A stretch of DNA of 64,000 bases from Sphyrna mokarran (taxonomy: Eukaryota), in the NCBI GenBank assembly GCA_024679065.1, contig JAGIQG010000004.1, positions 54,312,001-54,376,000 on the forward strand. Reading direction: 5' to 3'. The first letter of the stretch is position 1, and each line of letters begins with the position of its first letter. Below, in pieces: positions 10,328 through 55,660 of this stretch. The position numbers and the translations under genes were made by a program. The notes below the pieces were generated by a model. The model ran no database searches, was not told the origin of the DNA, and was given only the letters and a program-made list of their open reading frames with translations.

Positions 10328-10465
10328 TCAGCTTCTTTCTTTCTTTGTTGAGTTCACTTTAGTATATTTTGCAAGTTTGTTTTGTTTAAGTTTTGATGCG
10401 TCTTTGGAATCAGCAAGCTGCAAGGCGACATTTGTCAGCTTCTTGTCTCCACCTCTTTGTTTAGT
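10328..10465 (-). pseudogene. Terminal-exon paralogue B3, open frame but ITIMs eroded
   Basis: Same acceptor and start as A3 (ctttcacag|ACTAAACAA); TKQRGGDKKLTNVALQLADSKDASKLKQNKLAKYTKVNSTKKERS*; first Tyr replaced by Asn. Confidence 0.75.
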
Positions 10466-11035
10466 CTGTGAAAGTAATATTTAATATCACAGTAAATCCA
10501 TCGTCCAATCATTATTGAGACAATTGACATTTTAACGAAAGACTTATGGAATTTCCTTCCATTAGTTCCAATTTCAGATTGTAATCAGATTTTGGATTGG
10601 CTTCCTTTCCCTTTTCGGCAGCCCTCCCCCAACCTTGTTGAAATTCCATTTGAAATTTCATGCAAAATGAATTCGCCTGTTAATATAGTTCATTGAAGAA
10701 AACAAATGAATTATTTGACTAAAATAGAAAAAGTAATTCCATGCTGCTTTGTTAAGGCTGTTGGGAAAGGTGATAGTACTCAAGATTAATTTAAGGCCCA
10801 ATTGTCTGATCATTGATAGCCGCAGTTATCTCACGGGGTTAGACTCTAGGAGACATTTTTCAATCGCCTTACTGCCATTCCCACTAACCTTCTGATCTCT
10901 GGACTTGAGGCAAAAATGGCAAACTTGTTTGAAATCAGCCGACAGTTCACAGTTGGTAGATTAAGCAAGGGAACTTTCCCATTTCCTACATTTCAGTGTC
11001 CTATCACATAATATTGATGCCATTACAGTAGATGA

Positions 11036-11151
11036 CTAAAGATCTACCTGGGAATATATGATACTTTCCTCTCTCTCCCTGGGGGTCTCCTTTTCCCTGG
11101 TTCAATTTTGATGGTGGAATAGGCCGAGCTATTGTCGGTACCTTTTTTTGT
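11036..11151 (-). pseudogene. ITIM-exon paralogue B2 (1-nt frameshift at a C run)
   Basis: Acceptor attttacag|; TKKGTDNSSAYSTIKIEPGKRRP, then shifted frame REREESIIYSQ|GTAGAT; read-through IIYSQVDL*. Confidence 0.65.
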
Positions 11152-11444
11152 CTGTAAAATAGATATTTTCCACATGTAGTTGAGGAATTTCTTGTTTCGT
11201 AGTTTGGACAAGCATTATTCCAGGCAGACCCGAAAAAGAAACGTGGATAATATTGACTTTGATTTTTGTGTGAAACCGACCACGAGCCCGCAGCCCGATT
11301 TGCATCTCTCCAGATTGCTATTTCCAACCAAGTCAGTAAGCGAAATGCCAATTAATAAGGATTTAATGAAATCTGTCCCATAAAGACAAAACTTTCCCCA
11401 ATCCCCTCAGATTCTGAACAATTAATCTGTTATGTATGGTCATA

Positions 11445-11690
11445 TCGTAGAATCCATATGGTGCCCTTCGGCCTACAGAGTCTGCATCCATCACAATCCC
11501 ACCCAGGTTCTATCCCCTTAACTCTACCTAATCCCCGCTAATCGGCTGACATAAAGGGATAATTCCCTTTATGTAAGAGGAAACCAGAGTCCCCAGAGGA
11601 AACCTAAGCCAATGTGGGGAGAATATGAATGCACAAACTCCACATAGATAGTTACCCGACTGAACCCGGGTACCTGGTGCTGACCACCTA
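11445..11690 (-). mobile_element. HE1/V-SINE-type tRNA-derived SINE
   Basis: Reverse of tgtggagtttg...ttctcccca core and CR1-derived tail. Confidence 0.65.
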
Positions 11691-11707
11691 GTTGAGTATC
11701 TTTCACC

Positions 11708-11835
11708 TCAATCCGTCAGTCCTGCCTGAGAATAGATGGTGTGCTCTTTCTTGTGTTTCGGTTTGGAGGGGCCCTTTTCCTTTCGTAGGCTTGAGTAGCG
11801 TAGGCGTCAATGTTCTCACCCGGCCTTTGTCTAAC
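11708..11835 (-). pseudogene. ITIM-exon paralogue B1 (1-nt frameshift)
   Basis: Acceptor tatttttacag|; VRQRPGENID, then shifted frame LRYSSLRKEKGPSKPKHKKEHTIYSQ|GCAGGA; read-through AGLTD*. Confidence 0.65.
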
Positions 11836-12929
11836 CTGTAAAAATAAGACACAAAATATTGAAAGCGGCGACTCTGCCTCTATAGCGAGCTACTGTCAAT
11901 TCTAATTAATTCTGTCAATGTAAATATGCAGACCGTAAACAATAAAACTAGTTTGCAAGTGCACTCTTTCCCTTTTCGACTATTGTATCCAATATTGAAC
12001 AATAGGGTGGAGAGTATTTGTTGAATCACTTCAAGGGATGTTGGCTTCGCTGGCTAAGCTAACATACATTGACAGTCAATAATTGCACTTAAACCACTCC
12101 AGTCGGTGTCGGGTACGTGTGTTTCTGGTATTTTTAGGGAAGTCCTTCCACGATTCCGACTCAGCGACAGTGAAGAAACTGCAATATTTTTCCAAGCCAG
12201 GGTTTTCATTGATTTAGAGGGGAACTTCAACGTAGTGTTCCTATATATCTGCTTCGATATAGGACGAGTTGGTGCTGCTGGAGAGCCAGATCAGTCGGAA
12301 AGAAAAGCAGAACTTCTTCAGATAGGCATTCCTGGAAGATAAATGGCAGTGAAGTAAACATTAAGATAAAAACAAAATATTGCAATGCTGGAATCTGAAA
12401 CAAAATCAGAAAACACAGGAAAATCTCAGTAGGCCTGACAGCATCTGAGGAGAGAGGATAGAATATTAGCTCAATTCTGTTTCCACTGACGCTCATGATG
12501 TAGAGGTGCCGGCGTTGGATTGGGGTAAACTCAGTAAAGTTTTACAACACCAATTTTAAATCCAACCAATTTATTTGATAGTACTATCAAAGAAATTGGT
12601 TGGATTTAAAATTACAAAGAACAAAGAACAAAACAGCATGGGAAACAGGCCTTTCGGCCCAACGAGCCGCGCCGCCACCCCGATGTTCCCATCTCTACCC
12701 GCGATCCCGGTCCATGTTTATAGATCAGTGGATTTAAAACCAAATTTGAGACAATTTAGGGAGAATTTGTTTTGCCAATTAGCCTAAGAGCACATCTTTG
12801 GGATGTGGGAGGAAACCGGAGCACCGGTTGTGTTGTAAAACTTGACTGAGTCCACTGATGCTGTCAGACCTGCTGAGATTTCCAGCATTTTCTGTTTTTG
12901 TCTCAGATTCCAGCATCTACAGTATTTTA

Positions 12930-15351: not shown

Positions 15352-16240
15352 CTATAGAACATAGAACATAGAACATAGAACAATACAGCACAGAACAGGC
15401 CCTTCGGCCTTCGATGTTGTGCCGACCAAAATAAAAAGCAATGCCCCTCCTAACTAAACCATTCCCTTCTCATCCATATACTTATCAACTAACCTCTTAA
15501 ACGCCACCAAACTTGGCGCATCTACAACAGCTGCAGGCAGGGCATTCCACTCCCTAATCACTCTTTGAGTAAAGAACCTACCTCTGATATCCGTCCTATA
15601 ACTCATACCCCTTAATTTAAAGCTGTGTCCCCTCGTGCTAGCTTTCTCCATCCTAGGAAAAAGGCTATCACTGTCCACCCTATCTAAACCTCTAATCATC
15701 TTATATGCTTCAATAAGATCCCCTCTTAGCCGCCTCCTTTCTAACGAAAACAACCTCAAATCCTTCAACCTCTCTTCATAGGACCTGCCCTCCATACCAG
15801 GCAACATCCTGGTAAACCTCCTCTGTACCCTCTCCAATGCCTCCACATCTTTCTTATAATGTGGCGACCAGAACTGCACACAATACTCCAAGTGCGGCCG
15901 CACTAGAGTTTTGTACAGTTGCAACATGATGCTGCGGCTCCTAAATTCAATCCCCCTACCAATAAAAGCTAAGACTCCATAAGCCTTCTTAACAACTTTA
16001 TCCACTTGACTGCCTACTTTCAGGGATCTATTGACACATACACCAAGATCCTTCTGTTCCTCAACACTATTAAGAGCCCTACCATTAGCCCTATACTCTA
16101 CACATTTATTGTTCCTGCCAAAGTGCATTACCTCACACTTTTCCACATTAAACTCCATTTGCCACCTCTCGGCCCAGCTCTGCAACTTGTCCAAGTCACT
16201 CTGTAAACTAAAACACCCCTCTTCACTATCTATCACTATC
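15352..16240 (-). mobile_element. Young 5'-truncated CR1 (HER1-type) inserted into a SINE
   Basis: Open ORF 15454-16245 ([18 protein letters not shown]); (TTCTATG)n tail; SINE halves on both sides. Confidence 0.95.
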
Positions 16241-19900: not shown

Positions 19901-21086
19901 GCGCAGGTGGTGTCTGTTAGCTAAAATGTTTCCTTGACCTTTGGCTCTTTTGGTTTGACTAACTGAAGTGTACTTCCCTGGGAGCAGCACTAAAATGAAG
20001 CAATTTTTCAGTAATTGCTGTCCATAAAGTATTCTGATTAGCCTAGTTGTGTTTTCTCCTTTTTTAAAAGGTAGGATTATATTGTTGCAGGCAACAGGCT
20101 GATCTGTCCCTCTTTTGAAACTAGATAGCATATTCTTGGGTTCTATTAAATAGTTTGAATTTTGCAGAATGGTGGTGCATTGAAGTTCCCATTATCCTTT
20201 GCCACATTATTGGTGATTACAACACGTTTCCTGTTGCTTCAAACAGAACAAATTTTAAAAAGAAAACTGTTAAGTACAAATATTTGTTTTATTGAAGTTG
20301 AATTGATTGGTACCTAACGCTCCATAAGGAATCTCCAAATCTGATCTCAAACCATGGAAACTCAATTTTAAGAACTATCATAAACTGACATTATAAATCT
20401 ATATGACTTGGTTGATATCGTTTCAAACTTGAGCAAATTTATGATGCGCTACTCAAAGAAATAAAATATTTGCAAAGCCTTCTTGGTATGGAAAAAATCA
20501 CCTGATATTAGACTTGTTTCATTGGATCAGTGACCAATTCTCTTGTTTTACCACCTTAGCTTTGTGGATTCTCACCATTGGTCTGTACTTTAATTGCAAT
20601 AAACGAAACTGTATGGTTAGTGAACAAATATCAGGAGTCCTTGTGACACAGTGGGCACCTGCTTCTGAGGCAGAAGATCTGGGTTCAAGTCTGATCCAGG
20701 AGTTGCTTATCAAGAAATGTTGGTCAAGGAATGATGCTAAATAAGTTGAGTAACTTGCAAATCCTTAATGGACTCCAATGGTAGACAGTAAAAACAGGAG
20801 AAATTTCCACATAATGGTCAGCCATGTGATGGAAATTAATTGAAGCCTCTACTATCACTACCCACTTGGGGTTGAACATAATGCGTGTTATTAGAGCAAC
20901 AGACTCCTTGGAGGGCTAAATAGCTGGTGTCTATCAGACTGGTACCAAAAGTTGGATTAATATCCAGACTGGAGTGGATTCCTGGCTGTGAGGTCAGAGT
21001 GCTGTAGATTAGATCTGCCTTCAGGCACAGTTGGGGAAACAAATACCTGGGTCTACTTCTATAAAAAGCTCAATTTTGAGTTGTGT

Positions 21087-21230
21087 TTAGATTTTCAACT
21101 TCTCTCTCTTTGTCATGTTTATTTCTGCATACTCTACATGTTTGTCTTCCTGTTTAAATTTTGATGCTTTCTTGAAGTGAGCAAGCTGCAGAGTGGCGTA
21201 AGTCAGCTTGTTATCTCCGCGTTGTTTAGT
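21087..21230 (-). CDS. Terminal cytoplasmic exon with two ITIMs (cluster A, exon A3)
   Basis: Acceptor ctttcacag|, phase 0; [47 protein letters not shown]; a minus-strand AATAAA lies at 20293-20288. Confidence 0.85.
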   Translation of the reverse strand, partial: TKQRGDNKLTYATLQLAHFKKASKFKQEDKHVEYAEINMTKREKLKI

Positions 21231-24200
21231 CTGTGAAAGCAATATGTAATATTTGTTAACGCATCAGCTCATTATTTGCGGCAATCAGGTTTTTAAAAAG
21301 TTTTCTTTCATTTCAAGTCACAGTTAATAAGAACACAGCCCATCAAGTTTAAAGAATTCTCTTTGGAGCAATTTAGTCCCCTTTTCTCTTTTGCTAGATT
21401 TTTGAAATTATTGGTTTCTGTTTCCCTTTATCCCTGGCAGCCCACAAACACATCTCCAACCTGTTCTTAATCTCCACTCCTCCCCCAAGTCCTTGCCCAA
21501 AAACCACATTCTTGTACCATCAGTTAATGGAAACACCACAACGAATCTTTTCTCCAAAGAGAGAAATGCTAGCTTTTCCATGCGTAGAACCATTTTACAT
21601 TACCCCTGTAGGGCTCACACATATAAATGTGTGCTGACCTGAGCAGGCTGCAAAATCTGTGGCCTAACCAAAACTTGATAAAGTTTTAATATTAAAACTA
21701 TGGAATCCATCTATGTGTGCACTAATTATCCAGACCCCAAACCCTCTCTATCCTATAACCCTGTGTCTTCAGTATCCCTAGCTTACATAATCTACTTTTC
21801 ATGTTTTACTAACCACTCTCTTACAATGTCCTGCACTACCACCTTCAATGATTGATATACATAGAATCCCAGCTTCCAGTTCTGCACTCTGTTTAGAACT
21901 GTGCCAGTACATCTACGGTGTTTATCCCTATCCTTCCTGCCAAAGTCCAGCATCTTGTGTTTTTAGATTGCATTTTGCCACTAATCTGCCTATTCCGCTA
22001 TTTGTGTCCTGAAGCAGCCCATTAAAACTCATCCTTTGTTAGCTCCTCCAAATTTGGTATCATTGAGAATTGTTTGTATTGGTTTTATTTTGGGTCTCTC
22101 TCCTCTTCAAAGTCTTTCCCCAAATCGTATTAGTATTCTGTTTCAATCTTAACGTCTCCTGCTATTATAACCAATTTAAGACAGCAGATGCATACTTCAA
22201 TTAAAATAGCAGACAAATGAATTTCATACTTGCAGACTGATGGTTACTTGGATGCTGTGATAAGCTACATACGGGGTCATGTGGTAGGAATGCAGGTCGA
22301 TGCACCATGCTGTGCAGAGTATTCCATAAACTGTTTTGTTCTAATACTTGGTCACCAGTTATTGGAATCCCCAAAGAATATTTGAATTGCTGGTATTACA
22401 ATTGGGGCTTAAGACTGAATTTTGCATGAGCCCTGCCAATTTATCTGATCTATCTACTCTCTGGGTCAAGGTTTCAAGATCCTATTTACTCACTGGGTTC
22501 CTCTCCCCTCTTCCCCCATCCCCCAATCTCTGGGTCATGAGGCAAAAATGAATGCTAGTTGAGATCAGTCAACACCATCAGTTAGTTGATTTTAAATGTG
22601 GGGCCTTGCCAATCACTGCAGCTAAGTGTAGTACCACTTAACAATGACAGTGTTTCAATTAATGATCTGAGCTGTACTGGAAATATACAATGCTCTTCTC
22701 TATCTGTATGTGTTTGCATTTTTCCTAGTGCTGGTTTCGACAGGGGCGTTGTTATGTGAGTTTCTTATTTTGTGGTTTAGAACATCATCATGGCCAACCC
22801 CAAAAAGGAAACAGAGTCCAGTGTCCTTTTTATGTTGCCTCTGATTGCTTTTTGCAAATAAATCCGTTGGAGATATGCTGGTGCTTTATTGGACAGAATA
22901 AAATAAGTCCTAAGTCAAACCACCCTCTGTGACAACAGAGTATTGATCTTGGATGAAAACAGTTTGGATATTAATTGGCCCTACCTGGGAATAGGTGGAG
23001 TGCTCTGCCTCATGTCTCCGTTTGGAGAATCCATTCTCATATTAGTACCATCAGTTAATTTAGCTGTATGCAAACAGAATCATTTCTTTTTACTACATTT
23101 CTCTTCTCTGACCATATTTGTTCCTGCACTTTTATGTTTGTGTGGTCTGCTCCCGTCAAATTGTGGCTATTATCACTCATATCTTTAACCTGCACTATTG
23201 CCTTGTTCTTTTTTTCAATTCTCAGAACGAGTCACCTTCCTAATACCTTTGATTATGATACAAAATGTATTAACAAGCATCTGGGCATATAGGAACCTCC
23301 TATTTTTGGAACAAGTTGAATTATGAAAATGTTATCAATTGGTAGAATATGTCACAATAAATACTAATACTTATCTTGCCCTTATAAATAATAGAATCCC
23401 TACAGTGTACAAAGAGGCCATTCTGCCCATCAAGTCTACACTGAATCTCAACATCTTTCTCAGGCCCATCCCACTGCCTACCCTCATAACCCTACACATT
23501 TACCTCACTAATCCCCCTAACTTACATGTTTTGGGATACTAAGAGATAATTTAACATGGCCAGTTCACCTACCCAGCACATTTTTGGACTCTGGGTGGTA
23601 ACTGGACCACCCAGAAGAAATCCACACAGATAGGGGGAGAATGTGCACGCTACACACATTGACCCAAAGCTTGAATCGATCCGAAGTCCCTGGTGATATA
23701 AGACACCACTGTGCTCACCACTGTTTCACCCTTAATAATAAAAGCACGTGGGCAAAAAAGAAGGAATTGACGCTACAACATTATAAATCTCTTTGGTGTA
23801 TCATACCCCATTCTGGGAACAACATTATTGGGAGTGTTAGAAAGTAGGCGTAGGTTCAAGTGATCTCAATCTGTATTGCTGAATATTAGAAATAAGGTAT
23901 AGATTTATGTGAGTTTACTTTAATGTTTCTGTGTAAGAAAGGATAAAACTCCGATAGATTATTGTTAAACAAAGGTGCATACGTGCATGGGGGTGAGGAG
24001 AGGGGAGGCGTTGGTTTCATTTAAAACTGTTTCTATTGTGCTTAGAGAGTTTACAGTATGAAAAGCAAGCATGAGAAAGATTGAGCTTTTGTTTACCAAC
24101 TAGGCCATCTTTAGGGGAAAAAAGCCCTTGTGTTTTTAATTTAACTGAACCCATGGCAGATAGGTCTTAGCAGCTAGAGAGACAACAGCTCACTCAGTTC

Positions 24201-27200
24201 TGCCAGAAAGATGACAGTGAAGTAAATGCAAGTCCCAGAAACTAAAAAACAGTTAGTTCTAGAAACCAGAGAATGGAAAGAGATGTTGCAGGAAACTGAA
24301 GTTTTGAGAACAAGACTGAAAAAACTGAACAATTGTACTATTTATTGAAGTTAAGGACAGAGCTGAAAAGTACAGCTTAGTGAGAAACCAAACGTCTGAA
24401 GTAATCATAAGATTGGTGATATCTTGTTGCAGCCTGTGAAGCAAAAAGTGCTTGGCTGTTCAAGACAAATAAGTTACTGAAAGGATAGTTGGAAATCCTG
24501 GAAATGAATCCTTTCGAGAAACAGTTGAGGGAAAGCATGATTTGAAAGAAGGTTTGAAGGCATGCCTTTTTGAGAGTGATGACGTGCAGTTGCTGGCATT
24601 GGACTAGGGTAGACACAGTAAGTAGTCTCACAACACCTGGTTAAAGTCCAACAGGTTTAATTGGTAGCAGGAGCTGCGGAGCTTTTGGAATACTACCTCT
24701 TTATCAGGTGAGTTTCTCCTGATGAAGGAGCAGCATTCTGAAAGCTCGTGCTACCAAATAAATCTGTTGGACTTTAATCTGTTGTTGTGAGACTATTTAC
24801 TTCCCGAAAATGGAGTCTAAAAAGACTCGTGTAAATGGTAGAGTCCAGTGATGTTAGTTGGCTCACAATATAATAAGCATCTGGGAGAATGAGGAAAAAA
24901 CAAAGAAGTTTGATTAGGAGCATCAGAGTTCGTGTTATCTGACCACAGTTAGCCTGTTGCATTACAAGGATTGTGCATTTATTGAGAATATTCTAATCTA
25001 AGATGTATTTTGCAACCTGCATCATCCTTAAGATTTCCTGTTGCTAAAAGCTAATTGACAGTCCAGTGATTCATTTCATCCACATTTTCTAAAATAAAAT
25101 GTAAAAGTTACTGTCTTTTACTTTAACTTTAACTTTACTTTAACTTTACTAATATTGATTGGAATAGCTATAGCTCTAGCTCGTTAGAGGGGTCAGTTTT
25201 TATACAAAGTGTGCAGGAAAGTTTTTTGACTCAGTATGTAGATAGGCCAACTAGAGGTGAGGTTACATTGGATTTGGTGCTGGGCAATGAGCCAGACCAG
25301 CTGTTAGGCTTGGAAGTTGGTGAACATTTTGGTGATTGTGACCACAATTCGGTTACGTTCACCTTAGTGATGGATAGGGATAGTCATGAAGCTGGGGGCA
25401 GTAGTTATAGCTGGGGGAAGGAAATTATGAGGCCATAAGGAGGGAATTAGGGTGCATAGGTTGGACTAGGAAACTACAGGGACTGGGAACATCTGAAATG
25501 TGGAGCTTATTCAAGGGGCAGCTGCTGCGAGTCCTTGATAAGTATGTCCCTGTCAGGCAAGGAGGAAATGGTCGAGTAAAGGAACCTTGGTGTACGAAAA
25601 AAGTAAATTCGCTGGTTAAAAGGAAAAAAGAGGCTTATGTCAGGATGAGGCTTGAAGGCTCGGTTAGTGCAATGGATAGCTATAGATTAGCCAGGAGGGA
25701 GCTAAAGAGTGAGTTGAGGAGAGCTAAGAGGGGACACGAGAAGACTTTGGCTGATAGGATTAAGGAGAATCCTAAAGCTTTCTTTAGATATGTTAAGAAT
25801 AGAAGATTGGTTAGGGCAAGATTAGGGCCAGTCATAGACAGCAGTGGGAAGTTGTGCGTGGAGCCTGAAGAGATTGGAGAGGCACTGAACAAATATTTCT
25901 CTTCGGTATTCACGCAGGGAGATGTAAATGTAGTTGTGGAGAACACTGAGGTACAGGGTTGCAAACTGGAAAGTATTGAAGTAGATAGGGAGGATGTGCT
26001 AGATATTCTTGAGGGTTTGAAGTTGGATAAGTCCCCTGGGCCGGACGGGATTTAGCCTAGGATTCTCTGGGAGGCAAGAGAGGCGATTGCAGAGCCTCTG
26101 GCTCTGATCTTCAGGTCGTCGTTGGTTACAGGTATAGTTCTGGAAGACTGGAGGATAGCGAATGTGGTCCCATTGTTCAAGAAAGGGAAGAGAGACTTTC
26201 CAAGGAATTATAGGCCAGTGAGTCTTACTTCTGTTGTGGGCAAAGTATTGGAGAGAATTATTAGGGATAGGATTTATAGTTATTTAGAGAGAAATGAATT
26301 GATTGGGGATAGTCAGCATGGTTTTGTGAAGGGTAGGTCGTGCCTTACTAACCTTATTGAGTTTTTTGAAAAAGTGACCAAAGAGGTGGATGGGGGTAAG
26401 GCGGTTGATGTGGTATATATGGACTTTAGTAAGGCGTTCGATAAGGTGGCCCATGGAAGGCTTCTGCAGAAAATGCAGATGTATGGGATAGAGGGTGATT
26501 TAGCTAATTGGATTAGGAATTGGCTAGCAGATAGAAGACAGAGGGTGGTGGTTGATGGGAGATATTCATCGTGGAGTTCGGTGACAAGTGGTGTACCTCA
26601 GGGGTCTGTTTTGGGGCCCCTGCTGTTTGTAATTTTTATAAATGATCTGGATGAGGGTATTGAAGGATGGATTAGTAAATTTGCAGATGACACTAAAGTC
26701 GGTGGAGTGGTAGATAGTGAAGAGGGGTGTTATAGTTTGCAGAGAGACTTGGACAAGTTGCAGAGCTGGGCCGAGAGGTGGCAAATGGAGTTTAATGTGG
26801 AAAAGTGAGAGGTAATGCACTTTGGCAGGAATAATAAATGTGTAGAGTATAGGGCTAATGGTAGGATTCTTAATAGTGTTGATGAACAGAGGGATCTTGG
26901 TGTATTTGTGCATAGATCCCTGAAAGTAGGCAGTCAAGTCGATAAGGTTGTTAAGAAGGCATATGGAGTCTTAGCTTTTATTGGTAGGGGGATTGAATTT
27001 CGGAGCCGCAACGTCATGTTGCAACTGTACAAAACTCTAGTGCGGCCGCACTTGGAGTATTGTGTGCAGTTCTGGTCCCCACATTATAAGAAAGATGTGG
27101 AGGCATTGGAGAGGGTACAGAGGAGGTTTACCAGGATGTTGCCTGGTATGGAGGGCAGGCCTTATGAGGAGAGGCTGAGGGATTTGAGGTTGTTTTCGTT

Positions 27201-30200
27201 AGAAAGGAGGCGGCTAAGAGGGGACCTTATCGAAACATATAAGATGATTAGAGGTTTAGATAGGGTGGACAGTGATAGCCTTTTTCCTAGGATGGAGAAA
27301 GCTAGCACGAGGGGACACAGCTTTAAATTAAGGGGTGATAGTTATAGGACGGATATCAGAGGTAGGTTCTTTACCCAGAGGGTGGTTAGGGAGTGGAATG
27401 CCCTGCCTGCGGCAGTTGTAGATGCGCCAAGTTTGGTGGCGTTTAAGAGTTTAGTTGATAAGTTTATGGAAGAGAAGGGAATGGTTTAGTTTGGAGGCTC
27501 ATTGCTTTTTTCATAATTGGTCGGCGCAACATTGAAGGCTGAAGGGCCTGTTCTGCACTATAATGTTCTATGTTCTATGTCTTTTGAGTGAGGGTCTATT
27601 CTGGGACCTTCTCTTCATCAACTGGATTGTAACAGAAGGACGCAAGGCTTGGAAGCAGTTGTCGAAGAGATTTACTAGAATCGTACTGGAGGGAAGGACT
27701 TACATTAGAGAGACTAGAGAACGTATTATTATTCTCCTCACAACAGAGGAGGATAAAGTGTGTTCAAAATTTGGAGAGATTTTGACGAGTAGATAAGGGA
27801 GAGTGTTTTCAATCGTGGTTGGTTCAATGTCCAAGAGACAGAGATTTCGGATCATCAAAACCATCAGAGATAGATGAGCGTTGTTGTCTGGAAAACACTT
27901 CCTGAAAACGTGGGAGTGGGGTTGGCAGGTGCAGATTCCCTTGAATAAAAAAAAATGAAGGACCATATGAAATGAGCGGGGAATTAGGCTAATTGAATAA
28001 TTATCTCAACTCAGTGGCACAGAGAGAATAGCCTCCTTTCGGGGTTGCTCCTTATTTCTTTCGATGCACTTCAGTTCTTCGCTCCTGATCTTCACCCATG
28101 CAGAGGTGGGTGGGCAGGGAGAAGGAGGACCTAACCAAGTTGGCTGTTAAGAGGTCCAGGCAGCCTATAGTCGAGTTGGTCGTCTGCTCCATCACTGTGG
28201 CTACGTTCACAGCAAGCTGGATTTGGAGAGGGAGCAGGCAATGTCTACTGATGCATTTCAGGTCAATGGGAGCCCCTGGAATGCATGATTGCGCCCTGGT
28301 ACTGACATTATGGTTCAGTTAATTAAGTTCTTTTGCCTTTTGTTTTAGTTACAATGTGACATTGGGCGCTATTATCCTCTGTCCTTTTGATTAACACAGT
28401 AAGAAGTTCACAACATTAGGTTAAAGTCTAACAGGTTTATTTGTAGCAAACACCACCAGCTTTCAGAAATGGCTGTTCCTTCGTCAGGTGGGTGGGAGTT
28501 CAACCCCAGTCCAACACCAGCATCTCCATATCATGACTTTTGATTAATAGTAACCTTTCATTCTTTTTTAAGATTAAAAAAATGAATTAACTACTTATCA
28601 GGTTGATTGAAATATTTATTTCCATTCCTCCTTATTCCCTCTTTTTGGAGTATAAAAACATTATCTTCTTACCGTCTCATCACTCTGACCAGCTTCCAGG
28701 GAATTTCTTTTAACACCTGGAGAAAAGAAGAAATTGAACTTGAGTAACTTTCTAAATGTAAGCAAAGTCAACAACATGCTTTCCATTCTGAACACTTTTA
28801 CTGCCAAAAGGAAGGAGCCTTGAAAATTGAAACATTCCATTGTGTGATCTACCCCCAATGGAACACACTGCCTTTAGCGTGATAATCATAAACATGTGAT
28901 AAGTCGCTAAATTGCGATTGAAATATGACCAGAGGGAGACGTAAAACAGTCTGCCAGTTCCATATCAGCCGTTTTACATTGCCACAGAAAATTACTTAAG
29001 ATTGTTTACACTACAAGGTCCTGATATTTTAACAAATGCGGAACGTTAAGAAGGTGTACAAATTAATTACAGTTCGAATGGGAAAATTGAACATTCGCAT
29101 TTCAAAATTGATTTGCGTTGCCATATTCAACTCTCAATCACATAACGCTCTTGAGGCATCAACTTCGTTCTTTAAAGATGCACAGGGTGCTCTTTATTCC
29201 CTTTAATGAAGCACTATTCACCTGCCGTTTCTGTCTTAACAGTTTAATTGGGCATAACAAAATAAAAGTTAGCGGTGAAATAAGAAAACTTCTTACCAGC
29301 TGAAGCTTTTAATTTGAGTCTCGTCAAAATAATTATCAACAGTACAACAGCCAGTGCGCCACTTGCACATCCGAAAATGAGCGGAAATTGCTTTCCTGAA
29401 ATAGCGACAGGATCAACAAATGATTGAAATAAGCAACTTTCGAACACAGCGAGATTTTTACACCATCTTGGGTCTGGCGCGGGAGGACGCGGTGCAATGT
29501 TGTCTTTCCTGAAATTGTGTCCATTTACTCTGTGAGGGGACAATTTTATTTCTATAGCAGTAGCTATAAAAGGATCATAACGGGATCACAACAACAGTAA
29601 CGCAATTGATGGAGGAAACTAATCTATAAAGGCGCAGGAAATTTCTCTCTAGACCTGAGGGCTTTTCGGTCAAAGTAAAGGGGCTTATATTTGTGCCACA
29701 CCAGACAGACGCGCACCGGCTACAAGGAATAGCAAAGCTTTTCATTCTTCGGCACTGACAACTAGAGAAAACACACTGCAGCTCTTAGTAGGTAACAAGA
29801 ACAGCTTGCATTTAACATTCTAAAATGCTCAAACGCAGCGTTATCAAACACAGTCAAACCACATGAATAATATTATGACAGCTGGAGGTAGAGTTGAGGG
29901 AGCGTCGAAAATGAGAGTCGGAAAAGCGGGGATACTCAAGAGCGAGAGTTGAATTCAGATAGCGGAAGCCATTATGCGGACATAACGATTTTACCTTACA
30001 TGCAATTCAAATATTCAGGATATAAAAGCGACTACTAAAACTGATCATTTTTATATGTACGTCTATTTCACTTGGCAAGAATTTGACGAGGCATAAGCAC
30101 ATAAATTAGAGCAACATAGGAAAGTTAAAGCACAGAAGGAGGCCAATCGGCTCATCTTGTCCATGCCAGTTCGTGGACACGAAGTACCCTTTCTAATTTC

Positions 30201-33200
30201 ACCTTCCTGCGTCCGCCCCTTAGCCCTGCGGCTTACTCAAGGTGCAGATCTATGTACTTTTAAAAAAAGTTTAGGGTCTCTGCCTCCAGCAACTCAGGCA
30301 GCGAATTCCAGACCCCATCTTCCTTTGTTTAAAAAAAGATATTCCTCGTGTCTTCTCTACATCTTCTGCTACTTATATTAAATCTATGACCCCTGTTTCT
30401 AGAATTCTCCGTCAAGGGAAACGATTTCATCCTGTCCATTCTATCTTTTCCTCTCATAATTGTGTACACCTCTATCAATTTACTTCTCAGGCTTTTTTCC
30501 AAGGAAAATAATCTCAGCCTATCCAATCTCTCTTCATAGCAACACTTTTCTCGTCCCGGCAATCTCTAGTTTTAGATCTTTTCAGGAAAATATTCTCTCT
30601 TCTCCAGCTACAAACTATCTTGATCATTTTAATTCGTTGCCATTGATGTGACTTTGTAATTAAACAAAGTCTACAATCACCTTGTTAATTCAAGTTTGAA
30701 CAGCTGCCAGCTACATTAATAATAAATAATACAAATCGGAGTCTTTACCCCCGCTCGTTTCTGTAAATGTTTGGAATCTTACCTTGATTGACAGTGCAGT
30801 TGACGCTGGCGGGCATCTTAAGGGAGATATGAGATGCCAGACATGTATAAACGACTCTGTTTTGGAGAGGTCGTGTTTCTTCCAAAGAACTGGTGACCTC
30901 AAAAAGACCATCCACTGCCTCTTTTCTCACACTTTGTATTCCGGCCAGAATTTCCACACCATCTCTACGCCAGGAGATGTTTAAACCCTCCGGGTAAAAT
31001 GCAGCCGTTTTGCACTCGAATCTTAGAGAAGTCGCTGAACTCTCTTCATTCCGAACGATTTTCAGTGGTGTTGGAGGAACTTTTAACAGAGGGAAGAATC
31101 ATTTTTGAATTGAAAAGAGTAAATTCTCAATTGCCGAACATCGATACGCTTTTATACTCATACTGTGATAATAGTTATCATGCTGTCGCGTTTTTTTTAA
31201 ACTTCGGGCGTGCATTTATTTTATATAATGTTGTATGACGCTCAGCAAAATTGTCGGACGTTTTGAAAGCGGATCGTTCTCCCATAAATGATTACAATCA
31301 GGGAGGAAAGACATGATAGAGTTAAAGCCGGAATTAAAGCCATGATGTGCCGGCGTTGGACTGGGGTAAATACAGTAAGAAGTCTCACAAAACCAGGTTA
31401 AAGTCCAACATATATTTATTTGCTAAATAAATGATTGTTTACCAAATAAATGAATATTTGCCAAATAAACCTGTTGGGCTTTAACGTGATGTTGTGTGAC
31501 TTCTTACGGAATTAAAACAGCAGATCCTGGCGCGGGATTGTGTTCGGCAGCAGTGACCTCCATCCAGATTCCGGTCCGAATGTATCAGACAGGGAGCAAC
31601 AACCAGTCAGCACGAACATTGGGTTCTACTCGGGTTTTTCTGTAAGAATCATTGTGGTACTAAACGTTGTGTGTTCGTTTGAAAAATGACCCACTTCAAG
31701 TATTTAATGTTTCCAAACGTATTTTGTTGTACTGATTAATGTTAAGATGCATGAAATCAAAATACCTCCGATTGCTAAACTGGCACCAGACAAGACATAG
31801 TTATATGTCCGGATGTGAGTTACCATTGACTACACAACATTTCAATGATTACAATCAGGGAGGAAAGCCATGATGGAGTTAAAGCCGGTATTAAAGCCAT
31901 GATGTGCCGGCGTTGAACTGGGGTAAACAGTAAGAAGTCTCACAAAACCAGGTTAAAGTCCAACATTTATTTATTTGCTAAATAAATGATTATTTGCCAA
32001 ATAAACCTGTTGGGCTTTAACGTGGTGTTGTGTGACTTCTTACGGAATTAAAGCAGCGGATTGAGTTACCATTGATTACACATTTCAATGCCCCTGCTTG
32101 AGGTTTCAGATCGTGCACCTTTCACCAAAACATCTTTCTGGAGGCCGGATGCGAATGTTGGCATATTTTGCAAGCCAGAATAATTTTTGATAATTATATA
32201 TCGCTATGCAGATCATAACACCCATGGATTAATTCCAGAGATAAAAACTGGTCATGTTAAGTAAACTCAGCTGGTTTGGCTGAGTTTTCATTTCAGATTT
32301 CCAGCATCCGCAGTATTTTGCTTTTACTTGACTGGGTAGCTTGCCCTTTTGCAATTTTACTCGATCTGCTGAACACATTTTGTGGGGAGAAGATTCTGCT
32401 TCGAACAGTCCAAAGTTACAATTTTCTGATGTGAACCGCTCGATCTATCTGTCCACGCTACCAGTCTTCTACCTCAACTTCCTTTTGTTCATGGGGACTG
32501 TACACACAAGTAATGAATTACATATACCGGGTTTATAGAAATGTTCGGTGGTATCGATTCTCCACTTTATCAGTTGTGAGTGCATCACAGAAAGTCCAGT
32601 TGGCGTACCCCAGCAGTGCAAAAAAGGGAATTGGTTACTTTAACTGTCCTGAAAAGGCCAGGACCCGGGGTTGAAATCCAGCATTGAGAGGAAGATCAAA
32701 ACCTTCCTTCACAGTGGATTCTTAGATTCCTTTGTGGAAAGACCGTGGAATTTCAAACAAGTTACTATTGGGCACAACTACAACATATAAACGGTTATCC
32801 TAGGAACAGGGGCCACTCAGCCCCACTCATTGTGCTCTGCCAACCTTGGTGATATGATTAACTGCCTCACGAAACTAGGGAGCCAGATTCAATTCCGGCG
32901 TCACGTCGGTGTGGAATTTGCACATTCTCCCCTTGTCTGCGTGGGTTTTCTCCCAATGCTCCGGATTCCAAAGATGTGCTGATTAGATGGATTTTCCATG
33001 CTAAATTGCCCCTTAATTTTCGGTGGTTTAGCAGGGTAAACACGTAGAGTTAGGGGGATGGAGCCTGAGTGCGATTATTGTCGGTGCAGGTTGGATGGGC
33101 CAAATACTGTAGGTATTCTATAATTCTGCCTGATCTCTAACTTTACTCCATTTGTCCGACTTAATCCGTTTTTAGCAAAAATCTAGCCGTCGCGAATTTA

Positions 33201-36200
33201 AGGCAATGACGTAAAGGAAGTATTACATCGACAATTTCTAACAGCGGGCGGAAAAGAAATCTGATTTCGGAAATATTTGTTGCTGTAGTAGAGGAATTTT
33301 CACCTGTATTTATCGTGAAGACACTAAGAGTAAAGGTTCAGGCAAGTTTTGTTGGAGATTTATCAGGGTCAAGGGACTTGGGTTACGTGCAGAAACTGAA
33401 GAAGCTACGGTTGTTTTCTTTAGATCTGATAGTTTTAAGAGGAGACCAACTTTGTAAAGTCAGTAAGCAAAAAGTATCATTAGTGACACGAGAGTCGGCA
33501 ACCAGATTGTGTTTGGCAAGAGAGCGCAAGGATTCTTTGAGTAGAACGTAATTACAGCCTAGTCCTGTTATTGTTACCATATTGTTCAGCGTAAATCGTG
33601 AGTAGCGAGTGTAGGGATCCCGATTGATTTTCACTTCCTGGTTAGATCAACTAACTCGGCAGAGAGAGCATTTCGAAACTGCCCTTAAACCGAAATGCCG
33701 TGAATAACCGCTCTTACTTTCCTCGAAATCATCTTCTTGCAATCATCTTTGCGGGGAAGGGAAGAGGACGTCGGGGGGAGGGAGGGGGCAGAGGATGGTG
33801 TGTTACTCCGTACAGTTCTCGCCCCGCACGCCGCCATTATTCCTTCCTCTTTGATGTAAATTAAATGATCTTTGAAGTTTTGTAAAAGATTTGAGCTGGG
33901 AGGTGTTAAGATTGCTTACATTGTTCAATTGTGACGCCATTGTGGCGAGAAAGAACCAGACCCTGACATTTCATTACAACATCAATGCAAAATACTGCAG
34001 AGGCTGTCACTAGACATGACCTATGGATATGGCTTTACCAACTCGAACCATATTGGAGCTTTTTCAGTCAAAACTTGGAGTACGCTACATTTGAAGATGT
34101 CTGAACTTTGTTCTCTATTGCTCTGTATGTCTGATGCAGCAGGAAGAAGATTCTTAGTTGTTGTTGCCAAACACTAATCAATGGTAGTCTTTATTTTGCA
34201 CTTGTTTCTTTGCCAGGTATGTGGGTGCACAGTGGTTAGTGCTGCTACTTGTCAGTGCCAGAGACCCGGGATTGATTCCAGGTGACTGTGTAGAGCTTGC
34301 ATGTTCTCTCTGTGTCTGTGTGGGTTTCCTCCAGGTATTGAGTTCTCTCTTACTTTCCAAAGTTGTGCAGCTACGGTGAATTAGCCATAGAAACACGAAA
34401 ACTGAAGCAAGAGTAGGCCTTTCGTGTCTGCTCCGCCATTCATTTTGATCATGGTTGATCATGAAATTCGATATCCTTAACCCCCTTCTCCTCTTTGATC
34501 TCATAAGCCCGAAGAGCTATATCTAATTTCTTCTTGAAATCAGACAATGTTTTGGCCTCAACTGCATTCTGTGGTAGCGAATTCCACACATTCATCACTG
34601 TCTGAGTGAAGAAATTTCTCCTCGTCTGTGAGACTCTGGAGAGAGTGCAGAGGAGATGCTGCCTGGTATGTAAGGTCTAAGTTAGGAGGAGAGGTTAGGC
34701 AAATTGGGACTATTTTCCTTAGAAAGACGTAGACTTAGAGGTGCACAAGATTATGAGGGGTATAGATAGAGTAAACAGGGTTAAGCTTTTTCCTAGGATG
34801 GACTCGAATAGCACGTGGGGTCACGCGCTTAGGGTGAGGGGGATAAGGTATAATTTGGATGCTAGAGGGAGTTTTTTCACACAGATGGTGGGGGTATGGA
34901 ATGCACTGCCAAGTAAAGTGGTGGAGGCAGGTACTCTGGAGTTATTTAAGAAATACGTAGATGGGCACATGAACAGAATGGGAATGGAGGGGTATAGAAA
35001 ACTGATTTAAAATAGGGATCACGAGCCTTGGGAGTCTCTGGGAAGTGTATAAATAGATGATGATATTGATGTATTTGTTTTTATCCTACAGGTACTTTGG
35101 TCCACCTTGTTGTCTAACCAGGGGCATACTCGCGATGGGTCGTGAGAGGACTGCTCTTGGACTTTTTTTCGAGTGTATCCTAATGCTTCATGTCGTTAGT
35201 GTACGCTTGACCTGGACCGTTTGGTGGGCAGCACGACAGCTCAGTGACAATCGCTGTGCTGTGCAGATACGTGGATTTGGGCCTGTGTCTGTAGGAGTTT
35301 GCGCATTCTCCCCGTGCTTGCGTGGGTTTTCTCCGGGTGCTCCGGTTTCCTCCAGCGTCCCAGGGATGTGCTCTTAGGCTGGTTGGCCTAATTCTCCCTA
35401 GATTGTCTCAAATTTGGTTTTTAATCTATGGATTTGTGGGCGTGGACGGGGATCGCGGGTGGAGGTGGGGGCACCGGGGTGGCGGCACGGGCTCGTTGGG
35501 CCGAGGAGCCTGTTTCCTGTGCTGTTTTCTTCTTTGTACATTTGAAATACAAACGGAAAATGTCGGGAATGTCCAGAGGTCGGACAAGAATTGTGTAGAG
35601 AAACTGAGTTAACGTTTCGTACCATTTCATCATTGGCCTGGGAGGTTAACCTTGTTTCTCTCCACAGGGAGAACTGATCAGTGGAAATTATTTTGTATAT
35701 TTCTATTGCTTAATTTCAAAATGAAAATATCCACTATACATCGAAGTCAGTGAAAGACAATCCAGTATTCTCTAAATATAATTCGTTAAAACCAGCTTTT
35801 CCTCCAGTGATAAAAAAAATCAAATTGCATATATGGCGCCGAGCTGGAATCCTTCCGTTTACAATTACACCTACCGTATACAGTAAGCTGGGTGCCAGTT
35901 CCAGTTTCAGTAGATTTTTCCAGATATTTTACTTTACAATAATACACTCCGGAATCTGCAAAAGTCACATTCAGCAATTCAAGCGAACTTCTTCCCTTAT
36001 TCGCAGCAAATCGTTTTCTATTGTCTGGTTCGAGAAAGGATTGCTCTCCGCGTCTCCACCAACGAACATCGGGCATATCTTGAGATAAGGGAAATGTGCA
36101 GAGTATGGAAGCATTCGCGCCTCTGTTCACCTCCAAGTATTTAGGGATCTGAACCACTTTGGCCCAAGTTACTCTGGCGGCTGTCAGGAAAGGAACAAAG

Positions 36201-36485
36201 GTGGTGATGTAACAGGTAAATAAAAATAACTGAGAGAAGTAAATTATAAAAACAAGCAATCGAATTAGAGAAGCGCGGTATTTGATTTTACAGTGAGTTA
36301 CAGCTGTAGAGTATTTCAAATTACGACCTGCCATTATAAAATTCGGAGCATGTAATACCTGGCCAAAACACGCCCAGAAGAACCAGATGGCGAACTGTAA
36401 CTTGTAACGACATGTTGCATTTCGGTGGCTACTCACTGCAAATGACAATGCTATCGACGATGGTTTGCTAAATAATAGATTCCAT
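21087..36485 (-). CDS. Spliced gene model: VJ-type IgV + IgC1 + TM + two-ITIM inhibitory receptor (SIRP-like / antigen-receptor-like IgSF), 312 aa; premature TAG in the leader, so possibly a null allele or pseudogene
   Basis: Exons 36485-36437, 36180-35875, 31079-30783, 29395-29297, 28716-28673 and 21230-21087 all have AG/GT boundaries with junction phases 1,1,1,1,0. Total 939 nt, ending in TAA. Confidence 0.85.
22660..22765 (-). pseudogene. Degenerate ITIM-exon paralogue A2
   Basis: Reads EKSIVYFQ, which aligns with EESIIYSQ of 11048-11151; flank 22770-22860 resembles 11195-11335; no acceptor evident. Confidence 0.4.
22985..23063 (-). pseudogene. Degenerate ITIM-exon paralogue A1
   Basis: Acceptor tgcatacag|. 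The 3' end reads [13 protein letters not shown]|GTAGGG (read-through STYSQV). The 5' part is shortened and out of frame. Homologous to 11726-11835. Confidence 0.55.
23390..23725 (-). mobile_element. HE1/V-SINE-type SINE
   Basis: tagaatccctacagtg tail; ggggagaatgtgca core. Confidence 0.7.
24613..24800. mobile_element. Palindromic Penelope-type terminal-repeat derivative
   Basis: agtaagtagtctcacaacacctggttaaagtccaacagg ... ctgttggactttaatctgttgttgtgagactatttac inverted arms; same motif as the termini of 42462-43585. Confidence 0.75.
24716..24750 (+). ncRNA. Minimal type-I hammerhead ribozyme motif
   Basis: ctc CTGATGA [AGGA gcagca TTCT] GAA AGCT C GTG: conserved core, stem II, palindromic stem III and CUC cleavage triplet; stem I has one mismatch. 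Confidence 0.6.
25140..27579 (+). mobile_element. CR1 LINE, 5'-truncated, ~2.4 kb (end of endonuclease + RT), a few stops and frameshifts
   Basis: ORFs 25211-27489: [28 protein letters not shown]; TTCTATG tail. Confidence 0.97.
28673..28716 (-). CDS. Short cytoplasmic exon
   Basis: Strong acceptor tttcttcttttctccag|, donor ACG|GTAAGA, 44 nt, phase 1-0; [15 protein letters not shown]. Confidence 0.8.
29297..29395 (-). CDS. Transmembrane exon (uncharged TM)
   Basis: Acceptor ctatttcag|, donor G|GTAAGA, 99 nt, phase 1-1; [33 protein letters not shown] (hydrophobic span followed by basic stop-transfer residues). Confidence 0.9.
30783..31079 (-). CDS. IgC1-set exon
   Basis: Acceptor ctgttaaaag|, donor G|GTAAGA, 297 nt, phase 1-1. 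Encodes [99 protein letters not shown], with C1 hallmarks CxxxxFYP, IxW, DGxF and YxCxxxHxxL. Confidence 0.93.
31287..32090. repeat. Local tandem duplication containing short Penelope-end palindromes
   Basis: aatgattacaatcagggaggaaag...ttaaagccatgatgtgccggcgttg at ~31287 and ~31844; the second copy has an internal deletion. Confidence 0.85.
32870..33125 (+). mobile_element. HE1/V-SINE-type SINE
   Basis: ttcaattcc B box; gtgtggaatttgcacattctcccc core. Confidence 0.75.
34628..35540 (+). mobile_element. CR1 3' fragment with long 3' UTR ending in a SINE-like module
   Basis: ORF 34741-35010 (CR1 C-terminus), then a unique spacer, a SINE body (ggagtttgcgcattctccccgtg) and a CR1-type tail; homologous to 49410-50300 on the minus strand. 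Confidence 0.75.
35875..36180 (-). CDS. IgV exon, germline-joined VJ type
   Basis: Acceptor ttcctgacag|, donor G|GTAGGT. Encodes [101 protein letters not shown], with B-strand Cys, C-strand Trp, DSGVYYC and a J-like GxGTxLxV. Confidence 0.95.
36437..36485 (-). pseudogene. Leader (signal peptide) exon, 49 nt, with in-frame stop at codon 6
   Basis: acgATGg context; reads [15 protein letters not shown], then phase-1 donor A|GTGAGT in frame with the V exon; TAG at 36470-36468; length typical of Ig leader exons. Confidence 0.65.
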
Positions 36486-36489
36486 CGTT

Positions 36490-36800
36490 AAATTTACGAA
36501 ACGTGTGACCATCACATGAGAGATCACATGATTAAAACAGCGGATTGTGTTGGTTTACATTGGTGGTGGCGGGGGGGGGGGGGGAGGCAGGAGGAAGATC
36601 GCGGTAGAAGTTGGTCTCCTAACTGCCGCCGAAAGGCGATCACTTCAAGATCATTTTTTTGCAACCACTTTTGGAACACTTGTCTCCGATTTTCTTTGTC
36701 AATACCAGACTTTGATTCTTCATTTAATCCTGAAAGTAATGATGCCCGCTGCGGGCGGCCTTCCAGCACTTCATCTGAGATATTCTTCTTCTGGAAGGAG
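36490..36800 (-). promoter_or_regulatory. Candidate proximal promoter of the receptor gene
   Basis: Locally CpG-rich, immediately upstream of the leader ATG; two ATCACATGA E-boxes (36511-36519, 36523-36531), a CCAAT on the minus strand near 36560, a G-tract, and a GAGGAA ETS-type core near 36591. Confidence 0.35.
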
Positions 36801-55241: not shown

Positions 55242-55355
55242 CTTAACAAAACAATTCTTTTCCCAAGAACAGGGAACATCCTGCAAGTGTCTTCGCAACA
55301 CTGCTAACCCAGATTAACCAGAGGAGGTCGCTGTTTCCCGAAAATTGTTGCTGGG
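55242..55355 (-). CDS. Candidate activating-type TM exon with intramembrane Lys and immediate stop
   Basis: Acceptor attcctccag|, phase 1; QQQFSGNSDLLWLIWVSSVAKTLAGCSLFLGKELFC*, followed by donor G|GTACGT. Confidence 0.5.
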
Positions 55356-55542
55356 CTGGAGGAATAATTGTCGGAATTATGCACCGGATGTTGCTCCGGA
55401 ATATCTCATTATTCTCAATGTGTAAATTGTAGTCCAAATGCTCACCTTCAAATAACTTTCATTTTAATGTGAATTTGCACTCCTATTGTAAAGATTTGAA
55501 TTGAAAAGCGATGTGCGCGCTGGCCATGAACGTGTGTCTTGC

Positions 55543-55660
55543 CTTTGGCACTTGACAGCTTGAAATACTGCCCAAGGATGACTATCAGCACCATTATTAC
55601 CAATAGACTCACTCAATACCGAGCGCTATTAGAGGACAATGACATTGGGAGCGCCGCAAA
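55543..55660 (-). pseudogene. Neutral TM exon relic, paralogous to 29297-29395
   Basis: CPLIALGI [1-nt gap] VSLLVIMVLIVILGQYFKLSSAK, with donor AAG|GCAAGA; aligns with [29 protein letters not shown]. Confidence 0.6.

Follow-up and report, generated by a model that had tools for sequence, protein, structure and literature searches.

What kind of receptor does a shark encode when the ectodomain of an antigen-receptor chain and the tail of an inhibitory receptor stand together in one germline gene? The question is raised by a locus of Sphyrna mokarran that lies on the minus strand of a 64,000-nucleotide stretch of DNA (assembly GCA_024679065.1, contig JAGIQG010000004.1, positions 54,312,001 to 54,376,000), which is called the window hereafter and to which all coordinates below refer. 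An initial annotation, made from the letters alone, had proposed here a hidden, non-rearranging receptor with a variable domain that contains its own joining segment (VJ), a single C1-set immunoglobulin (Ig) domain, an uncharged transmembrane (TM) helix and a tail with inhibitory motifs of the immunoreceptor tyrosine-based kind (ITIMs). As described below, a single non-rearranging gene for a membrane receptor of type I, apparently intact, is probably present in the interval; the receptor consists of a leader, a compact VJ domain, a C1 domain, a neutral TM helix and an ITIM tail, and the gene is a member of a multigene family. We hold this identity with high confidence. As far as can be judged from sequence, it is a real gene that probably encodes a functional inhibitory receptor and is ordinary within its family.

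How is such a gene put together? Six phase-compatible exons had been proposed on the minus strand, and inspection of the window bears them out, with GT-AG borders, between 36413 and 21087. They are given here from 5′ to 3′, together with the remnant of a seventh exon and two candidate polyadenylation signals (a slash marks a splice border):

36413-36359, minus strand: coding part of the leader exon; ATG at 36413, 18 codons plus one base, phase-1 donor G/GTATTA
36180-35875, minus strand: VJ exon; phase 1 to 1, acceptor ttcctgacag/, donor G/GTAGGT
31079-30783, minus strand: C1 exon; phase 1 to 1, donor G/GTAAGA, with the family linker (V)PPTPLKI at its start
29395-29297, minus strand: TM exon; phase 1 to 1, with a hydrophobic stretch that lacks charged residues
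28716-28673, minus strand: cytoplasmic spacer exon; 44 bases, 15 residues, phase 1 to 0
23038-22985, minus strand: remnant of a decayed tail exon (cassette A, the seventh exon); it ends at /gt, its 5′ half is gone, and in-frame stops lie upstream
21230-21087, minus strand: last coding exon; phase 0, with LTYATL and VEYAEI, and the stop at 21089-21087
ATTAAA at 20594 and AATAAA at 20293, minus strand: candidate polyadenylation signals from a pattern scan, about 0.5 and about 0.8 kb past the stop

Introns 1 to 4 are in phase 1, as is usual in genes of the Ig superfamily, and intron 5 is in phase 0. All ten splice borders are canonical, the polypyrimidine tracts are good, and each of the six exons is open. 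The short spacer exon, for which no coordinates had been given before, was located through its phase, its splice signals and homology; its counterparts read GSKKDSAEAGQAEEQ in protein P0154 of Heterodontus and GVKRNSVEAGQSEEA in protein P0196 of Mustelus asterias. At the other end of the gene, the leader aligns with that of P0004 from Scyliorhinus canicula (MSMQITVQCMALLGIVW). Domain and database searches with the gene model were run exon by exon, and the joining of the exons was judged from relatives whose sequences are contiguous. The junctions GTGTQLTVY/VPPTPLK and LKLKAS.G.K.NS.EAGQ match those of P0004, P0154 and P0196: the border between V and C1 is read through in the S. canicula protein P0004, Heterodontus P0154 runs across the borders of C1, TM and spacer exons (TVNRGTDNTFLLIFGC ... 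LKLKASDGSKKDSAEAGQAEEQ), and Mustelus P0196 is a partial model that covers the TM helix and the tail only. It should be kept in mind that the protein models of these relatives are automatic predictions, so that the support they give to the junctions is that of conservation and not of RNA.

As proposed, a V domain and a J motif, GTGTQLTV, are present in a single exon, which reads directly into its splice donor; the residue ahead of GxG is neither F nor W. The absence of a recombination signal sequence could also be confirmed, since neither CACAGTG nor CACTGTG, nor the six-base cores, nor a nonamer occurs in 35700-36500. A rearranging Ig or T-cell receptor (TCR) segment is rejected on these grounds: the J is fused in one open exon, a splice donor follows it, and no recombination signal is found. 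A profile check had been suggested for the V domain, and the Pfam V-set model matches the exon at 2.1e-13, with 50.8 bits against a cut-off of 26, while a hidden Markov model (HMM) of the family V domain gives 137.8 bits. The domain is compact. From Cys27 to Cys81 of the exon there are 54 residues, against about 65-70 between the two cysteines of a canonical V-set domain. The match to the Pfam V-set model places 90 residues over 107 model positions with 17 deletions, and the match to the I-set model is nearly gap-free over strands A to F. The top single-sequence matches of the exon in the PDB are I-set domains (DCC, NCAM2 and contactin), with TCR V-alpha (1e-4) and the SIRP-alpha V domain (about 9e-4) lower down, and in the profile alignment the first domain of SIRP-alpha has about 10 extra residues between strands C′ and D relative to the family. 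The hallmarks conserved in at least 90% of 68 aligned family sequences are both cysteines, a WW pair, DxGxYxC and GxG....V. The V and C1 exons of the window keep every family position that is conserved at this level, and the V domain is 73% identical to that of S. canicula P0004.

The C1 exon shows the Cys...W...YxCxVxH pattern. The C1-set model of Pfam (PF07654) recognizes it at 1.2e-7, with 32.4 bits against a cut-off of 21, in agreement with the domain assignment first proposed, and the family C1 HMM gives 144.6 bits. Both Pfam matches, to V-set and to C1-set, are much stronger than chance would give. C22, W36, C79 and H83 are invariant in an alignment of 72 family C1 sequences, and the exon is 70% identical to its counterparts in S. 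canicula P0172 and P0173. A scan for Ig motifs finds only one V and one C1 in the window, and no further family V or C1 exon with a score better than E 0.4 was returned by the family HMMs from the 64 kb. A SIRP in the strict sense, with the order V-C1-C1, is rejected for the reason that the window has a single family C1 exon.

What does the gene carry on the other side of the membrane? The hydrophobic stretch of the TM exon is without charge, as had been stated, and the last exon does contain LTYATL and VEYAEI, both of which fit the consensus (S/I/V/L)xYxx(I/V/L) and whose tyrosines are 23 residues apart. The TM exon is 90% identical to residues 8-38 of Mustelus P0196 and the last exon 83% identical to its residues 91-137, with both motifs intact; in an alignment called A1 the last exon also lines up with the terminal cassette of 18 family tails. 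Mustelus and Heterodontus have, ahead of this terminal cassette, an intact cassette A of 37 residues with an ITIM of its own (VAYASL or TAYATL), which reads VQQGPNNETVAYASLNLKHDNGSSKRRHEKEHTIYSQ in P0196. Because the first half of cassette A is lost in the window, only one pair of tyrosines is left to the gene, fewer than its close relatives possess. A search from the C1 exon to the end of the gene for an alternative TM exon with an Arg, of the kind used by P0004, found none at E<5.

The tail can be compared with that of SIRP-alpha. In one paper, the SIRP-alpha stretch DITYADLNLPKGKKPAPQAAEPNNHTEYASIQTS (DITYADLNL...HTEYASIQ) serves as a module that binds and activates SHP-2 when phosphorylated (PMC5589908), and according to another, ITYADL and LTYADL are ITIMs conserved in mammalian SIRP-alpha (PMC5413580). 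When the last exon of the window gene is aligned with the SIRP-alpha stretch by eye, without an alignment tool, 13 of 33 positions are shared with one gap, and the distance between the tyrosines is 23 residues against 24. By analogy, the ectodomain would bind a ligand, Src-family kinases would then phosphorylate the two tail tyrosines, and, with both phosphorylated, this stretch would engage SHP-1 or SHP-2 through their tandem SH2 domains, in the manner of the corresponding part of SIRP-alpha. Engagement of the phosphatase would finally dampen the activation of the cell that bears the receptor. We infer phosphorylation, SHP recruitment, expression, cell type and ligand, and we hold the mechanism with moderate confidence.

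Is the gene alone in having this layout? A phmmer search with the C1 exon among 1.84 billion representative proteins gave 416 matches at E<=0.001, of which 127 reached E<=1e-10. Many of the best 150 matches are proteins of 230-420 residues with the C1 domain at about residues 122-220, and a V followed by one C1 was found in 88 of the 215 proteins collected. The order of parts, namely leader, VJ, a VPPTPLK linker, one C1, TM and tail, is common to the window and the family, as seen in A1 with its 23 proteins. All 39 clusters of V-C1 proteins for which a name or a species was returned are chondrichthyan, and they come from 16 species. These are S. canicula, S. torazame, M. asterias, Heterodontus francisci, Heptranchias perlo, Chiloscyllium punctatum, C. 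plagiosum and Hemiscyllium ocellatum, and further Pristis pectinata, Mobula hypostoma, M. birostris, Narcine bancroftii, Hypanus sabinus, Hemitrygon akajei, Leucoraja erinacea and the chimaera Callorhinchus milii. Word-seeded searches led from P0154 to 31 proteins and from the profile A1 to 45, and again every named one was chondrichthyan; no V-C1 protein from outside the group was present among the named relatives. Within one species, family members lie on one chromosome-sized record, as is the case in Heterodontus, Scyliorhinus, Heptranchias, Mobula and Callorhinchus.

The nearest predicted relative is XP_038662025 of S. canicula, with 73% identity in V and 68% in C1. Automatic names of the relatives are inconsistent. 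The most frequent is SIRP-alpha-like ('tyrosine-protein phosphatase non-receptor type substrate 1-like'), and there are also signal-regulatory protein beta-1-like, NCR3 ligand 1-like, tapasin-related protein-like, immunoglobulin lambda-1 light chain-like, M1-specific T cell receptor beta chain-like, CD276 homolog and uncharacterized. For example, isoforms X1-X4 of a single S. canicula locus are called SIRP-alpha-like, tapasin-related-like and HLA-DO-beta-like. Thus, the gene can hardly be called hidden, as it had been in the initial annotation: proteins of the same architecture are already predicted in RefSeq or UniProt from 16 chondrichthyan species, and the gene is a new member of an automatically annotated family that the databases already contain. 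No paper describing a shark VJ-C1-ITIM or SIRP-like family was found in a literature coverage that is incomplete, so that 'undescribed' is not established for the family.

The family has more than one kind of signalling end. Among the 88 V-C1 proteins, 35 show an ITIM consensus after the TM helix, which is an upper estimate because the regular expression also matches the membrane-proximal VRYVQL; 19 have a longer tail without the consensus, 13 a short tail, and 21 no TM helix in the model. R or K is found in the predicted TM window of 13 of the 32 proteins without an ITIM match. In P0004, P0151, P0153, P0018 and P0173 the TM helix begins with an Arg and ends with 'DH', and P0174, which is among the 13, has the same. 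Those five have short or shortish tails and fall within the 35 only by the membrane-proximal match, such as VRYVQL in the P0004 group. As ITIM-tailed members and short-tailed members with a basic TM helix exist side by side, we take the family to be one in which inhibitory receptors are paired with activating ones. In S. canicula, the ectodomains of P0172 and P0173 are 83% identical, but the one continues into a neutral TM helix and a spacer and the other into a TM helix of the Arg...DH type and a short tail. It seems that closely related ectodomain lineages exchange their signalling ends.

Trees of the two domains place the gene well inside this family. The C1 tree, a quick maximum-likelihood tree of 159 domains and 100 columns, took its input from 125 single-C1 proteins and from 17 hand-picked of 86 multi-C1 proteins, with at most two domains each; two of these 17 had one C1 and so entered twice, and the other multi-C1 proteins were left out. 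The V tree, also a quick one of about 100 columns, was made from the 88 V-C1 proteins plus P0197. Outgroups in these trees are only those that the C1 phmmer search had supplied. A single clade unites 129 family domains in the C1 tree, with a support of 98 in the Shimodaira-Hasegawa-like approximate likelihood ratio test (SH-aLRT). Outside it fall UrIg2-like multi-C1 proteins of elasmobranchs, teleost IgD, other multi-C1 proteins, a tortoise protein and two lungfish SIRP-like proteins, and the deeper nodes, including the one that places the lungfish proteins, are without support. The C1 domain of the window groups with S. canicula P0172, P0173 and P0004 (91), inside a subclade of 31 rows (96) that also has Heterodontus, Heptranchias and ray sequences; the V domain groups with the P0004 group of S. 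canicula (99) and within a set of 26 rows (99). In 3035 of 3775 protein pairs the V domains differ more than the C1 domains do, the mean identity being 41% for V against 46% for C1.

How, then, is the family related to receptors that are already known? The initial annotation had called the gene a SIRP-like inhibitory receptor, and this is supported in part. The likeness is supported by the automatic names of the relatives, by the match to the SIRP-alpha ectodomain structure 2wng and by the tail, while the number of C1 domains, one and not two, speaks against it. In SIRPs and in the family, a single exon encodes a germline V domain together with its J-like G strand, and one or more C1-set domains come next, and the likeness to SIRP-alpha extends to the neutral TM helix and to a tail cassette of the form [I/L]TYAxL, about 22 residues, xEYAx[I/V]. 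SIRP-beta is the activating partner of SIRP-alpha, and the family of the window gene likewise has inhibitory and activating-type members. The differences are that the family has one C1 domain instead of two, that its V is about 10 residues shorter and I-set-like, and that two lungfish SIRP-like proteins stay outside its C1 clade; moreover, SIRP-alpha has two tyrosine pairs and the window gene keeps one intact pair. In bits, the family profile scores 95.9 against the SIRP-alpha ectodomain 2wng (53.5 for V and the second domain, and 41.2 for the third, with the shared VPPT linker), 86.5 against SIRP-gamma, 85-91 against lambda light chains, and 114.9 against UrIg2, the last being a sum over three stretches (46.1, 26.4 and 37.2). 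Therefore, the ectodomain is about equally distant from SIRP, from Ig light chains and from UrIg2.

UrIg and UrIg2 (Flajnik et al. 2023 and 2025) deserve attention as non-rearranging, antibody-like genes of elasmobranchs in which a single-exon VJ is followed by C1 domains. According to PMC12227049, UrIg is a secreted molecule with three C1 domains, nine are present in UrIg2, and the two are the most promising candidate relatives of the gene that RAG invaded, retained in elasmobranchs only; the words ITIM, SIRP and inhibitory are absent from that paper. Among whole chains in the PDB, the C1 exon matches UrIg2 (9dmx) best (2.7e-12), and with the family profile UrIg2 ranks second. Its best single domain gives 22.9 bits with the C1 exon and 37.2 with the family profile, no better than a C1 domain of Ig or SIRP. 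The window gene differs from both in having one C1 and an ITIM tail, and UrIg2-like C1 domains lie outside the family clade; membership among the UrIg genes is rejected on the single C1 and the separate clade. By summed score, the top matches of the C1 exon include the elasmobranch proteins P0002, P0003, P0006 and P0007, of 980-1428 residues, which have 6-12 tandem C1 domains and are named titin-like or uncharacterized. They are probably of the UrIg2 type. The multi-C1 proteins called UrIg2-like in the tree owe this putative label to 10 C1 repeats and an elasmobranch origin. The proposal that the VJ-C1 ectodomain matches the predicted ancestor of antigen receptors before RAG did not hold up well, since its one basis is the order of the domains. 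Moreover, the V domain is compact and has I-set domains as its top single-sequence PDB matches, and the C1 clade of the family is separate from UrIg2-like sequences.

Other comparisons are looser. PRARP, attributed to Fu et al. in 2019, is said to be a non-rearranging V(J)-C1-TM-tail molecule of chicken and other non-mammals that was proposed as a remnant of the antigen-receptor precursor; a literature search for PRARP returned only unrelated uses of the acronym among the matches listed. Teleost NITRs belong to bony fish and have a second domain of the I type, not C1. By description, the family resembles NITR, KIR and LILR families in being multigene, clustered and fast-evolving, with ITIM-tailed and charged-TM members and an outer domain of the V(J) type. 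NKp30 (NCR3) is similar in presenting a germline VJ-type domain on a single-pass receptor, and it has neither a C1 domain nor an ITIM tail. The listed PDB matches of the V exon did not include it, and identity with NKp30 is rejected because NKp30 is without a C1.

Several retroelement fragments accompany the exons. One of them lies inside the gene:

25211-27489, plus strand: reverse-transcriptase fragment of a long interspersed nuclear element (LINE), in the intron between the spacer exon and the cassette A remnant, and outside the gene product

This fragment makes up much of the gene length. Its open reading frame (ORF) at 26122-26808 is recognized by Pfam as RVT_1 (8.8e-35), and 26706-27580 is 94% identical to 16237-15366. 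Further LINE-type fragments are found at 15366-16237 on the minus strand and at 62349-63359 on the plus strand, with similar ORFs near 45 kb, 51 kb and 62-63 kb. About 150 bases upstream of the leader ATG, at 36560-36600, a simple-sequence tract consists of some 13 consecutive C, which are G on the plus strand. On the other side, 9-11 kb downstream of the stop, an orphan set of decayed tail exons occupies 10319-11838 on the minus strand. It comprises a copy of the last exon at 10477-10331, whose DNA is 74% identical over 172 bases to 21086-21252 and which reads LTNVAL, with the first tyrosine lost, and AKYTKV, and cassette-like stretches with frame breaks at 11838-11726 and 11214-11039. No V or C1 exon lies between these orphan tail exons and the gene. 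They could be what is left of a paralogue that has disappeared, or alternative 3′ exons that are not used. Elsewhere in the window, at 55243-55660 on the minus strand, there are TM-like ORF pieces, LLWLIWVSSVAKTLAGCSLFL with a Lys, and VSLLVIMVLIVILGQYFKLSSAKGK, with no family V or C1 beside them.

Several observations weigh against the view of the gene as an intact inhibitory receptor. Words from the V exon were looked for in public sequencing runs, and 6 of the 18 runs listed contained a part of them (a share of at most 0.18), none being recorded as RNA. The 3′ end of the gene has suffered decay: cassette A, which bears an ITIM in Mustelus and Heterodontus, is truncated, and an upstream AG at 23064, if used, leads to an immediate stop. 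P0004, the closest relative in V, has an Arg-containing TM helix and a short tail and lacks an ITIM tail, so that the signalling end is not stably tied to the ectodomain lineage of the window, and the 35 ITIM-bearing relatives, as said, are an upper estimate. A search with the tail of P0055 alone returned 2 proteins, P0055 itself and P0063, both of Callorhinchus, among 975 candidates. Because this tail-only search was blank outside the family, homology of the tail with that of SIRP-alpha lacks statistical support; matches of family tails to the Pfam SIT model are weak and below the cut-off.

Do these points make the gene an unexpressed or decaying copy in a birth-and-death family, whose six main exons have simply not been hit yet? 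The truncation at 23038-22985, the orphan tail exons 9-11 kb downstream with their lost ITIM tyrosine (LTNVAL at 10477-10331) and the lack of any RNA run matching the V exon among the 18 listed all fit such a copy, and families of this kind turn over fast, as the excess divergence of V over C1 in 3035 of 3775 pairs also illustrates. On the other hand, the six exons are open with ten canonical splice borders, all family positions conserved at 90% or more are kept in V and C1, and the last exon retains 83% identity to Mustelus with both motifs intact. We regard a decaying copy as unlikely and prefer an intact receptor gene.

Two further explanations concern not the state of the gene but its nature. 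Sharks carry germline-joined genes of the light-chain and TCR type, and the layout of leader, VJ and C1 is the same as in a light-chain cluster that is joined in the germline; with the family profile, lambda light chains reach 85-91 bits, near the 95.9 bits of SIRP-alpha, and the automatic names of some relatives are Ig lambda-like or TCR beta-like. Could the gene be such a rearranging receptor that was secondarily fused? Against this, the gene has a TM exon and an ITIM tail. The fused VJ is common to 68 of 68 aligned family members, the chimaera included, and therefore the fused state is old. The C1 clade is separate from the sampled IgD and multi-C1 domains, the V is about 10 residues shorter than that of Ig or SIRP in the C′-D region, and no remnant of a recombination signal is left in 35700-36500. 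This origin appears to us extremely improbable. A molecule of the B7/butyrophilin type or one related to tapasin, which would act as a ligand or a chaperone instead of an inhibitory receptor, is suggested by the names NCR3LG1-like, CD276 homolog and tapasin-related-like among the relatives, and the C1 exon does give 32.2 bits with the C domain of B7-H6, as good a match as with any single C1 domain of Ig or the major histocompatibility complex (MHC). The names, however, disagree even among isoforms of one locus. The J-type GxGxxLxV strand of the V domain, the repeated tyrosine cassette of the SIRP-alpha type in the tail and the presence of activating-type partners, which is a pattern of receptors, leave this explanation very unlikely. 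The reading that we retain is that of a germline VJ-C1 inhibitory receptor belonging to a paired family.

What would such a gene mean for cartilaginous fishes? By itself it adds little, being one copy in a clustered family that is already predicted. The interest rests in the family, which is found in sharks, rays and a chimaera, has both signalling types and no consistent name, and joins a SIRP-alpha-like tail to an ectodomain with one C1. No living lineage that has Ig, TCR and MHC is older than the cartilaginous fishes, and it is among non-rearranging VJ-C1 genes that relatives of the gene split by the RAG transposon are looked for. It is conceivable, although we consider it rather doubtful at present, that the family represents undescribed germline VJ-C1 paired receptors throughout the cartilaginous fishes and is a single-C1 sister or ancestral form of the SIRPs. 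If this were true, a VJ-C1 ectodomain with a SIRP-type, double-tyrosine, SHP-binding tail would have existed in the first jawed vertebrates beside the rearranging receptors, and the family would act as a sensor of self and non-self of the natural killer or myeloid type. If the family were properly described, the SIRP-type inhibitory module could perhaps be traced back to the base of the jawed vertebrates, and the description could give sharks a counterpart to the innate receptor families of the NITR or KIR kind.

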